DNA from: Macrostomum lignano
Lineage: Eukaryota
Assembly (NCBI GenBank): GCA_002269645.1
Contig: NIVC01003240.1
Coordinates: 1 to 64,000, forward strand
DNA: 64,000 nucleotides
Direction of reading: 5' to 3'
The position numbers and the translations under genes are program-made. Each line of letters opens with the position of its first letter. Within the stretch, counting starts at the first letter, position 1. Positions 30,141-39,814 of this stretch are shown in pieces. A model generated the notes under the pieces. That model had not been told where the DNA came from. It saw nothing but the letters and a program-made list of their open reading frames with translations, and did not search any database.

Positions 30141-33100
30141 TCCGACCCAGGTGCTCGGTGCTTCGAGTCCAGCTCGCTCCACTCCGAACAGACGAGGCCG
30201 AGGCTGCTCAGCAGCCGCACCTGCTCATCGCTAACCAAGCCGTCGTTTTCTGGCCTCTCAGAGACGCTGCGATCCACGCTGAGCAGTCGAGCGTCCTCAA
30301 GGTTGTGATTCCGCACGGTCAGGCGGGCCACCAGCTCCAGCTGGAAGTTCGCCTGGCTCGACGCGTTGGCGAAAGCATCGGCGCTCGGCCGGCACTTTGC
30401 CAGGCTGGTCAGCGACTCGGCGACCAGCTGGGAGCCGCACTCGGCGATTGGCGGGGGCGCGGGCGCCACTCGGACATTGGCTCCGCGCCCGGGCTCCGGC
30501 ACTGGCGTCTGCGCCGAGCTGTGGCTCCTCGATGGCGGTTTCTCGGCCGCTCGGATGCCCGAATCGACAGAGGCGAAGTCGAGGAAGGCGCCGCATTCGC
30601 TGGCTGTCGGTTTCTGAGTCTGTGTTGCCAAGGCGACCGCCGGGCGAACCTCTTTGAACTCGCCGGTTGTCTGTGCCGGGGTTTCCGACTTCGGAATTGG
30701 TTTCTCTGCGGCTCGAACCCCGGATTCGAGAGTAGAAATGTCTTTGAACGCGCCGCACTCTCCCAATGTTGGCGGCAGTGTCTGCGTTGTCAAGGCAACC
30801 GTCGGGCGAGCCTCTTTGAACTCTCCGAAGGTCTGTGCCGAGGTCTCAAACTTTGGAATCGATTTCTCAGCTGCTCGAACCCCAGTCTGAAGTGACGAAA
30901 AGTCTCTTAGTGCTCCACAGTCGCTGAGTTGTGGCGGTTGAGTCTGCGTTGCCAAGGCGACAGTTGGTCGAACCTCTTTGAACTCGCCAACAGTCTGAGC
31001 GGAAGTCTCGAATGTGGGCGGCGGTTTCTCAGCTGCCAGAACTCCGGTCTCCAATGAAACAAAGTCCTTGAACGCGCCGCACTCTCCAAGCGCTGGCGGC
31101 AGCGTCTGCGTTGCCAAGGCGACAGTTGGTCGAACCTCTTTGAACTCGCCGACGGTCTGCGCGGAAGTCTCGAATGTGGGCGGCGGCTGCTCCACCTTGC
31201 GAACGCCGGTACTAACGTAGTCAAGATCAACAAACGCGCAGCACTCGCTCGCCAACGACGGCTGCGTTTGCGTTGCCAAGGCAACGGTAGGGCGCACCTC
31301 TTTGAACTCGCCGATCGTCTGAGCTTGTTGGTCCGATTTGGGCGTCTGCTCCTCGGCCGCCCTGACGCCGGTGTCCTCAGAGACGAAGTCGAGGAAAGCG
31401 CCGCACTCGCTGCTCACCGGGGCGAGCGTTTGCGTCGACAGAGCGGAGGTCGGCCGGACCTCCTTGAAGTCACCCAGAGTCTGCGCGCCGCGGCTCTCCA
31501 TGTCGATATCGAGCGAAGCGCCGGAGTCTACCACCGGCCGGCGCGGCGGGTAGTTGCACTCGACCCGCGTCACCGCCCTGACGCCATCGCAGGCATCGCC
31601 GCCGATTTCGATTCGTTTCGCCGATACGAAATTTCGGTGCGGCAGGTCAACAGCCAGCCGCCGGTGCACCATCAGCTCGGCTCGGTGGATCTCCCGCTCC
31701 ACCCGGGTCGGCTGGTTCACCATCCAGTACATCCGGCTCACGTGCTGCTTCGGCTCTGTGGATGGCGACGGCTCGCCGATGGCGCTGCTGCTGCGCACGA
31801 CGCTTCGACGTCCATCGGTGACGTCGCCTGATCCAGTGGCAACTCCAGCCTGCAACAGCTGGTGCACCTCCTCGTTGACCACCGTGCTGGTCACCGTTCG
31901 CGCCGAGGCTGTGGATAGGTTTCGAGTGCGGCCCTGTGACTGCGAAATCGGTGGCTGCTGCTTGGTCAGCTTCTCCGCGTCCGTCTGGTTGGAGAACACG
32001 TACACATTGGTGCTGGAAGGCGGTTGGGTGGCGCTCATCTACTTGCTCGTGATAGCTAGCTCCTCTTCGCACCCACACTTTCACCCACCTCACTCCTCCG
32101 CCCATCTCACACTTTTGCCCACCTCATACCTCCACCCCACGTCACTCCTCCGCCCACTTCACTCCTCCGCCCACCTCACTCCTCCGCCCACCTCACTCCT
32201 CCGCCCACCTCACTCCTCCGCCCACCTCACTCCTCCGCCCGCCCACCTCACACCTCCACCCATCTCACACCTCTGCCCATCTCATACCTCCACCCACCTC
32301 ACGCTTCCGTCCACCTCACTCCTCCGCCCACCTCACTCCTCCGCCCACCTCACTCCTCCGCCCACCTCACTCCTCCGCCCACCTCACTCCTTCGACCACC
32401 TCACTCCGAACCTTTGCTCCACCGAGCTGTCCGTCTCAATGCGAATCTCCGGTACAGAGAACCCCGGCGAATTCAGAGCTGCCTCATCCTGCTTCGTCGA
32501 AGCCTCCCTGTTGGAGTCCAGCCTCCGGTTTCGCAGCCTCTCTAACGCCTCAACGTGTTCCTTAAAGAGTTTGAATATCAAAGCTATGTTTTAGCTCAGC
32601 TTGTTTTACCATTTTAGACCGCGGGCGCTTGAAATAGAAAAACGCTCACATTGAGAACTTTCAGCAGAGCTCTCGGCTGAATCACCTCCGACTCCTTTAA
32701 CGATCTGGTGCGCCTGCCACTGTTGCGCAGACTGTCATTCCGACTCAAGCCGCCGCCTCCGCTGCTGAAGCCTTCCGTAGAAGTCACCGACGACAAGGAC
32801 ACGTTGGAGAGGCGGCGCTCCCGGCTGGCGCGCACAGCCTGGTCAGACGGCGGCGCGCGTCTGGCACGGATCTGATTGAGCAGGCGTGCCATCGCTGCAG
32901 CTTCATTGCCACTCAGGTAGCACATGTAGCTGGACTCCACTTCGGACAGGAAGGTGTACAGGGAGGCCTCGGCCGCGTCCGAGTCTGTAGTGTACTGGGT
33001 TGCGGTGTGTCTGTCTGTTTTATTGACTGTCTGTCTGTCTGTCTGTCTGTCTGTCTGTCTGTCTGTCTGTCTGTCTGTCTGTCTGTCTGTCTGTCTGTCT

Positions 33101-39100: not shown

Positions 39101-39814
39101 GTCTGTCTGTCTGTCTGTCTGTCTTAGTATCTGTCTTAGTGTCTTAGTGTCTTAGTGTCTGTCTGTCTGTCTGTCTGTCTGTCTGTCTGTCTGTCTGTCT
39201 GTCTGTCTGTCTCTCTGTCTGTCTGTTTGTCTGTCTGTCTGTCTGTCTGTCTGTCTGTCTGTCTGTCTGTCTGTCTGTCTGTCTGTCTGTCTGTCTGTCT
39301 GTCTGTCTGTCTGTCTGTCTGTCTGTCTGTCTGTCTGTCTGTCTGTCTGTCTGTCTGTCTTAGTATCTGTCTTAGTGTCTTAGTGTCTTAGTGTCTGTCT
39401 GTCTGTCTGTCTGTCTGTCTGTCTGTCTGTCTGTCTGTCTGTCTCTCTGTCTGTCTGTTTGTCTGTCTGTCTGTCTGTCTGTCTGTCTGTCTGTCTGTCT
39501 GTCTGTCTGTCTGTCTGTCTGTCTGTCTGTCTGTCTGTCTGTCTGTCTGTCTGTCTGTCTGTCTGTCTGTCTGTCTGTCTGTCTGTCTGTCTGTCTGTCT
39601 GTCTGTCTGTCTGTCTGTCTGTCTGTCTGTCTGTCTGTCTGTCTGTCTGTCTGTCTGTCTGTCTGTCTGTCTGTCTGTCTGTCTGTCTGTCTGTCTGTCT
39701 GTCTGTCTGTCTGTCTGTCTGTCTGTCTGTCTATCTGTCTATCTATCTATCTATCTATTTATCTACTAATCTATCTAACATGCTTACCCATTTTCTGGAA
39801 ACAACAGCCGTCAT
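30137..39814 (-). CDS. Multi-exon plakin-family-like protein: spectrin-repeat/SH3 core followed by a low-complexity region and six 54-aa repeats (about 1130 aa as modelled)
   Basis: Hand-built, phase-consistent GT-AG exons on the minus strand: 39814-39788, 37693-37568, 37192-37121, 36758-36654, 36568-36473, 35845-35633, 34246-33999, 33922-33817, 32994-32650, 32560-32405, 32038-30137. The translation includes [29 protein letters not shown] (cf. plakin QWSWxLQL...HL..NxAYFQFF) and AVALCSY...[20 protein letters not shown]...[22 protein letters not shown] (plakin SH3 plus PSVC..PPP..EA). The first exon and the true 3' end are less certain. Confidence 0.8.
32085..32404. repeat. Intronic 17-bp C-rich minisatellite
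   Basis: Unit CACTCCTCCGCCCACCT. Confidence 0.88.
33008..33812. repeat. Intronic (GTCT)n microsatellite
   Basis: Directly visible. Confidence 0.95.
34416..35404. repeat. Intronic 24-bp minisatellite
   Basis: Unit GACACTTTTACT(G/A)ACTGTCCATCT with 18-bp deletion variants. Confidence 0.95.
35913..36384. repeat. Intronic 15-bp minisatellite
   Basis: Unit GATCATGTCAATG(C/T)G. Confidence 0.92.
36766..37103. repeat. Intronic (GTA)n trinucleotide microsatellite
   Basis: Directly visible. Confidence 0.95.
37723..39775. repeat. 2-kb intronic (GTCT)n array with higher-order structure
   Basis: Directly visible; recurring TAGTATCTGTCTTAGTGTCTTAGTGTCTTAG interruptions. Confidence 0.95.

Follow-up and report, generated by a model that had tools for sequence, protein, structure and literature searches.

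Does a gene of the flatworm Macrostomum lignano encode a plakin reduced to the SH3-bearing core of this protein family? The question arises from a stretch of 64,000 nucleotides (nt) of contig NIVC01003240.1 (assembly GCA_002269645.1, positions 1 to 64,000; hereafter the window), in which an initial annotation, made from the sequence alone, had proposed an undescribed mini-plakin hidden as ten small exons among giant repeats. Assembly of the exons and comparison with the public model define a minus-strand gene, Mlig023320.g1 (30137-39814), with 11 exons and a product of 1,120 amino acids (aa). The exons are real, and the gene most probably encodes a reduced plakin-module protein, in which one spectrin repeat (SR) with an inserted SH3 domain is followed by a Ser/Arg-rich linker and by six tandem repeats of 54 aa. 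The gene is real, transcribed and constrained, and its sequence is public but unstudied.

Exon chain and public record

The ten small exons proposed initially (27-345 bp) were recovered as such: each border carries an AG acceptor and a GT donor, all exons share a single frame and, with exon 9 starting at 32994 and exon 10 still counted as 156 nt, the joined chain has a length of 1,494 nt and codes for 498 aa (Table 1). The low-coordinate end had been misplaced at 32405; exon 10 ends at 32412 and is followed by exon 11 (32012-30137). The idea that the protein consists of the SH3-bearing core only (330-500 aa) had to be abandoned as well, since over half of it is contributed by this further exon of 624 aa with its six 54-aa repeats. 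On the gene strand, a 633-codon open frame (32038-30140) lies downstream of the ten-exon chain; an exact database look-up of this ATG-to-stop open reading frame (ORF) returned no record. The GC content at third codon positions (GC3) of the exon chain is 0.75, coding-like throughout, and the AT-rich flank has an overall GC of 0.28-0.37, a difference typical of coding sequence.

The 11-exon product is letter-for-letter identical to GenBank PAA52447.1 ([quoted passage not shown]) and corresponds to UniProt A0A267DUX3, automatically named "Desmoplakin SH3 domain-containing protein". The coding sequence (CDS) of PAA52447.1 is placed at 30137-39814 in its record, and the window therefore uses the coordinates of the record itself. 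For this assembly, the gene models in GenBank come from a genome-guided RNA-seq transcriptome (StringTie/TACO), and their boundaries were placed with the aid of reads carrying the spliced leader or poly(A) (PMC5730564), which makes the 1,120-aa model transcript-based. The product was already public under an SH3-derived name; no paper on the gene was found, nor any literature mention of the locus tags or of Macrostomum together with plakin.

The plakin-type module, the linker and the 54-aa repeats

Searched against Pfam, the ten-exon product matched SH3_10 at aa 222-282 (E 8.8e-8, 32.6 bits, curated cut-off 22.8). In phmmer searches of all PDB chains, plectin 3pe0 (SR4-SR5-SH3) was matched at aa 116-308 (E 8e-10) and desmoplakin 3r6n (SR3-SR6) at aa 101-314 (E 6e-9), and plakin motifs could be recognized in the alignments (TCWSWIVQL vs TQWSW(M/I)LQ, ALCSY vs A(V/L)CDY, VWRV vs HWKV, and PSVCL vs PSVCF). 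The PDB alignments cross exons 4-8 and thereby lend independent support to the splice chain. Together with SH3_10 they confirm the proposed succession of W-S-W helix, SH3 domain and following helix and, as they run through the flanking helices, identify a plakin-type SH3 inserted within a spectrin repeat. The plakin similarity, which had been expected to stop by about 330 aa, ends near aa 314. Used as sole query, aa 290-496 gave no plakin match, and that of aa 1-165 was confined to aa 101-156. As judged from these comparisons, the detectable plakin similarity covers aa 101-314, approximately one spectrin repeat plus the inserted SH3, and is equivalent to SR5.

The remaining parts of conventional plakins were not recovered. 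A full plakin domain would hold two repeat pairs plus the SH3, and up to SR1-SR9; only aa 101-314 align. Even at E 10, the search of the full protein against Pfam returned SH3_10 only, in addition to one insignificant DUF243 match. Profile searches of the translated chain had been anticipated to give SH3_10 and spectrin-like hits: the former was obtained, and neither Pfam Spectrin nor Spectrin_like matched in the protein. The canonical SH3 families (SH3_1/SH3_9) and Pfam Spectrin were absent at E 1 and a beta-spectrin match in the PDB was not significant (E 0.098), which does not place the protein among the spectrin-type members. The plectin repeat (PF00681) was found neither in the 1,120-aa protein at E 10 nor in exon 11. 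Regarding spectraplakins, Pfam gave no match in the protein to the N-terminal CH domain or to the spectrin-repeat rod, EF-hands and GAS2/GAR of the C-terminal side. The prediction that CH, rod, plakin-repeat and GAS2/EF-hand regions would be lacking was therefore upheld in Pfam searches of the protein and its flanks, bounded by the neighbouring YJU2 and RING genes. As the SH3 module is the single plakin or spectraplakin feature detected, the protein is best described as plakin-module-containing and, by sequence comparison, stands outside the plakin and spectraplakin families in the usual sense.

AlphaFold2 models obtained without an alignment predict, with low confidence, helices at aa 47-90, 112-166, 176-207, 288-327, 336-357, 360-376 and 438-474, and the SH3 segment (215-285) is poorly formed in them. 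After aa 394 the helix at 438-474 is the sole one predicted and nothing ordered appears at aa 475-670, in these low-confidence models and with no dedicated coiled-coil predictor applied. A Ser/Gly loop encoded in exon 4 (aa 91-111) breaks the equivalent of the continuous SR4-C/SR5-A helix of plakins, and the models provide weak evidence that a three-helix SR4 is not evident before this loop.

The Ser/Arg-rich linker, predicted to be without structure, extends over aa about 390-670. In coding order, exon 11 comprises a Ser/Arg-rich stretch, six head-to-tail 54-aa repeats and a short tail. Differences from repeat to repeat are distributed over the codon positions as 228/156/457, third positions being dominant. 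Neither the exon 11 sequence nor a profile of the six repeats retrieved relatives from Pfam or the PDB, and the 54-aa repeat appears to be new, having no detectable relatives in these searches.

Table 1. Coordinates of the exons, repeats, intronic arrays and genomic copies of Mlig023320.g1 (window positions unless indicated; a slash marks the splice border)
Feature	Position	Strand	Description
Exon 1	39788-39814	-	27 nt, aa 1-9; ATG at 39814, identical to the public CDS start
Exon 2	37568-37693	-	126 nt, aa 10-51; AG/GT borders, phase 0
Exon 3	37121-37192	-	72 nt, aa 52-75
Exon 4	36654-36758	-	105 nt, aa 76-110; Ser/Gly-rich loop; skipped in-frame in one older model
Exon 5	36473-36568	-	96 nt, aa 111-142; W-S-W helix, corresponding to helix A of a plakin-type spectrin repeat
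Exon 6	35633-35845	-	213 nt, aa 143-213; remainder of helix A and helix B
Exon 7	33999-34246	-	248 nt, aa 214-296; SH3 domain; Pfam SH3_10 at 34040-34222
Exon 8	33817-33922	-	106 nt, aa 296-331; helix C after SH3; last detectable plakin similarity at aa 314 (about 33868)
Exon 9	32650-32994	-	345 nt, aa 332-446; two more predicted helices, then Ser/Arg-rich linker
Exon 10	32412-32560	-	149 nt, aa 447-496; donor AAG/gttcgg
Exon 11	30137-32012	-	1,876 nt including stop, aa 496-1120; acceptor ttccag/C at 32012
Six tandem 54-aa repeats	30521-31492	-	aa about 670-993; 19 invariant columns
Intron 1 array	37720-39756		(AGAC)n on the gene strand, 2.0 kb; also in copy L002, with other length
Intron 3 array	36765-37099		(ACT)n
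Intron 5 array	35914-36384		15-bp minisatellite
Intron 6 array	34416-35423		24-bp minisatellite
Intron 8 array	33008-33813		(GACA)n
Intron 10 array	32084-32407		17-bp minisatellite starting at the donor region; gtgagg donor in first unit
Copy L002	10001-22062 of extracted locus		gene span 12,062 bp vs 9,678 bp in the window
Copy L003	10001-23000 of extracted locus		annotated as 457 aa; CDS ends after exon 9 via intron retention

Genomic copies, gene boundaries and competing gene models

Three near-identical loci with the same neighbours and intact reading frames are present in the assembly: the window, L002 (NIVC01000830.1) and L003 (NIVC01002277.1). All 11 exons are intact in the three copies, exon 11 being an intact 1.9-kb frame in each; L003, in spite of its shorter annotated CDS, nonetheless holds exon 10, the repeats and the intact exon 11 frame. 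The copies are homeologous, with the same intronic repeat families in the same introns and different copy numbers, as in the case of a (CTA)n array that measures 335 bp in the window and 760 bp in L002. Comparison of exon 11 in the window with that of L002 revealed 22 differences over 1,876 positions (13 synonymous and 9 non-synonymous changes), giving proportions of synonymous (pS) and non-synonymous (pN) differences of 0.027 and 0.0065, respectively, and a pN/pS of 0.24 (one-sided binomial p 8e-4), an estimate that covers exon 11 in this pair of copies. Exon 11 is under purifying selection, and the C-terminal half of the protein is therefore coding and constrained.

Relatives were sought with the 82-aa exon 7 query in an exhaustive HMMER search of 1.84 billion representatives, which retrieved the gene's own 1,120-aa protein at 100% identity. 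As any orthologue with more than 50% identity would fall within that protein's own representative cluster and escape notice, the protein cannot be called species-specific. Six further exon 7 matches were rejected as relatives, being unrelated repeat proteins (WD40, NHL-like and similar). Word-index homology searches with the 498-aa chain, exon 11 and a 273-aa core returned nothing, not even the window's own protein, which is present in the collection, and these negatives are accordingly weak.

On the 5' side, frame inspection and the GC profile show an AT-rich interval between 39.9 and 46.4 kb, with stop codons abundant in each of the three frames, and the ATG of YJU2 lies at 46479 on the opposite strand, head-to-head and 6.7 kb upstream. 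In the GC-rich open frames tested in the flanks, up to the neighbouring genes, Pfam gave no match to CH, spectrin, plectin, EF-hand or GAS2. The nearest in-frame stop 5' of the exon 1 ATG is 50 codons upstream, and the exon 1 ORF shares its frame with an AG acceptor near 39895. The initial annotation had warned that this acceptor might mark additional upstream exons. The acceptor is there, as noted; the public CDS starts at 39814. The spliced leader (SL) of M. lignano has 35 nt and ends in ATG (PMC8629364), and trans-splicing affects 30-39% of the genes in this species (PMC8629364, PMC5730564). Given trans-splicing to a leader that ends in ATG, an SL acceptor at 39895 is no less likely than an upstream exon that escaped notice; assigning this function to the site is speculative.

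Various observations weigh against the 1,120-aa model and its reading. The annotated exon 10 donor gttcgg is weak and a consensus donor 7 nt downstream leads to a frameshifted product of ~619 aa; the other public models differ in length, with 807 aa when exon 4 is missing, 457 aa through retention of intron 9 and 1,766 aa in the RING fusion; and transcript support for the 1,120-aa model was seen as annotation, not at the level of reads. In addition, the AlphaFold2 single-sequence models are poor, with a mean predicted local distance difference test (pLDDT) score of 39.6 for 1,120 aa and 44.2 for 457 aa, so that the lack of SR4/SR6 and a disordered linker are conclusions that depend on weak prediction and on missing sequence similarity, and the functional reading proposed below is by analogy only.

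Two GT donors 7 nt apart close exon 10 (32404-32413), AAG/gttcgg at 32412 and GAG/gtgagg at 32405. Splicing from 32412 to 32012 preserves the frame and yields 1,120 aa; donor 32405 is out of phase with exon 11, which would then be read in the 32123-31650 frame. Use of this second donor or retention of the 89-nt intron 9 would make the main product a short mini-plakin of ~450-620 aa that ends soon after the SH3 core. GAG/gtgagg indeed fits the GT[G/A]AG donor motif of the species better than gttcgg and a 457-aa model with intron 9 retained has been deposited for the third copy (PAA59324.1). A short main product is nevertheless unlikely, considering that the transcript-derived model of 1,120 aa occurs at two independent loci, that the third copy does possess exons 10 and 11, and that an exon 11 intact in three copies with a pN/pS of 0.24 would be unexpected if it were untranslated.

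The exons could also form part of a larger gene. This might be a conventional spectraplakin whose remaining exons lie far upstream, to which the in-frame acceptor near 39895 would lead, or a plakin-RING fusion, since an older model (UniProt A0A1I8IQ65, 1,766 aa) fuses the plakin-module gene to the RING gene and polycistronic transcription units occur in M. lignano (PMC5730564). Yet the newer transcript-based annotation keeps the genes separate at all loci, each of the three copies has YJU2 head-to-head at a distance of 6.7 kb, beyond an AT-rich, stop-filled interval, the GC-rich islands tested contain no CH, spectrin, plectin or GAS2 match, and the acceptor could equally receive the spliced leader. 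Transcripts running into a conventional spectraplakin were named at the outset as the result that would overturn the mini-plakin; the transcript-derived public model does not extend in that way, and a larger gene is very unlikely. Hardly any weight is given to the third alternative, a decaying partial duplicate of a true spectraplakin gene, transcribed without a function of its own. This would agree with the fact that, of the plakin domain, no more than a single repeat and the SH3 can be recognized and that the SH3 exon found no relative beyond its own protein among the 1.84 billion representatives, with the word-index searches empty, but decay is at odds with 11 exons intact in three copies, purifying selection on exon 11, a coding-like GC3 of 0.75 throughout and internal repeats conserved at the protein level. 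The 11-exon gene encoding 1,120 aa thus remains the preferred reading.

Tandem arrays make up 79% of the intron sequence of the gene, and those scoring at least 200 cover about 34% of the 64-kb window. The view of exons hidden among giant repeats is accurate in this respect; the arrays are typical of the M. lignano genome as a whole, in which simple and tandem repeats represent 15%, duplicated sequence at 95% identity or more reaches 180 Mb and a hidden polyploidy has been described (PMC5730564). Both the tandem arrays of the window and the near-identical gene copies are accounted for by this repeat-rich, hidden polyploid genome, and the extended micro- and minisatellites of the introns reflect a trait of the whole genome and are no part of the mechanism. 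Next to the gene, a 28-bp minisatellite of about 10 copies (29851-30140) holds the stop codon (30139-30137) in its first unit and starts the 3' untranslated region, and a (CT)n array (about 40052-40133; gene strand, about 41 copies) is located roughly 240-320 bp 5' of the start codon, in the interval shared with YJU2. Arrays elsewhere in the window include 18384-20858, 8255-9768, 11035-12380, 55855-57839 and 59237-60751; several minisatellites of 1.3-2.5 kb have units 93-99% identical (one of them with a 44-bp unit in 56 copies, 99%).

The divergent gene of the splicing factor YJU2 (46479-48781, plus strand; Pfam Saf4_Yju2, E 4e-14) has a public product of 263 aa and an intron consisting almost entirely of a 33-bp minisatellite (46894-48210, about 40 copies), which generates long but spurious open frames (142-269 aa) on either strand. 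Downstream, the RING-finger gene (24392-21177, minus strand) has a public product of 615 aa, the C-terminal half of which is unassigned. Regarding other open frames, one of 380 codons in a GC-rich island (53797-54936, minus strand) showed a sub-threshold match to Srw, a nematode-type seven-transmembrane chemoreceptor family (E 0.028, 14 vs 22 bits), and may encode a divergent G-protein-coupled receptor; an ankyrin-repeat frame (63573-63998, plus strand; Ank, E 3e-11) continues past the end of the window; and a frame with two poly-Gln runs beside a minisatellite (9822-10250, plus strand) may belong to an exon of another gene or be merely repeat-derived. Rfam and tRNA scans of the 64-kb window were empty.

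Proposed function and relation to known plakins

By analogy with plakins, it can be tentatively proposed that the 1,120-aa protein acts as a cytoplasmic scaffold or cytolinker, a reading that as a whole is possible although the balance is against it. In plakins, junction components dock onto the helical platform formed by the plakin domain (PMC5979291), and the SR-SH3 cassette might similarly provide a junctional or membrane-associated/cortical partner with a platform for rigid docking or force sensing. The plakin SH3 is described as masked by the preceding repeat and proposed to be a force-released sensor (PMC5601466); with no clear SR4 before it, the SH3 studied here may lack the masking partner it has in plakins. 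The basic, Ser-rich linker, which contains RRxS-type motifs (RRLS- and RSLK-type sites), could be regulated by phosphorylation, and the six 54-aa repeats could bind a polymeric partner multivalently, e.g., a cytoskeletal filament. That the protein would be the founder of reduced cytolinkers in the flatworm lineage, in which an SR5-SH3 unit freed of the masking SR4 was fused to a 54-aa repeat that binds filaments or junctional polymers, is rather unlikely. If true, such a family would represent an independent and compact solution to the linkage between cytoskeleton and junctions.

Plakins are normally giant multi-module cytolinkers, and a constrained protein of 1,120 aa in which the SH3-bearing spectrin repeat alone is kept and coupled to an unrelated repeat would show that the SR-SH3 cassette can function as a portable unit outside the plakin context. 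M. lignano is amenable to transgenesis, and the action of the SR-SH3 unit alone is testable in this organism. New in this study are the interpretation of the architecture (an isolated SR5-SH3 joined to an unrelated repeat), the 54-aa repeat and the correction of the competing gene models. The practical value is lower than first assumed, as the sequence and its SH3_10 domain were already in GenBank/UniProt; rather than an undescribed mini-plakin, the gene is a modest curiosity of plakin evolution.

Among known systems, the spectraplakins are the form in which invertebrates have conserved plakins (PMC3352950, PMC9145010). Their members Shot, VAB-10, MACF1 and BPAG1/dystonin share the SH3-bearing plakin module with the M. 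lignano protein and have, in contrast to what was found in it, CH domains, long spectrin rods, EF-hands and GAS2/GAR. Reduced spectraplakin-like proteins have been reported in early-branching animals, including Amphimedon A0A1X7V918, Trichoplax B3S1H0 and a "truncated" Nematostella protein (PMC9145010); like the protein described here, they are shortened relatives devoid of some canonical modules. Compared by description only, the sponge and placozoan proteins lack CH, the plakin domain and many spectrin repeats (PMC9145010), whereas in the M. lignano protein part of the plakin domain is retained and all other modules are lost. Periplakin and envoplakin, the smallest conventional plakins, are also without a CH actin-binding domain (PMC5979291); unlike them, the M. 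lignano protein carries an unrelated 54-aa repeat. With respect to plectin and desmoplakin (3PE0, 3R6N), the size is 1,120 aa vs 2,800-4,700 aa in this class, only ~210 aa align, SR3, SR4, SR6 and later repeats are undetectable by sequence, no CH or plectin-repeat domain was detected and a coiled-coil rod is not apparent in the low-confidence models. What the protein has in common with both is the succession of a W-S-W spectrin-repeat helix, a non-canonical SH3 placed before the last helix, and the helix that follows it.

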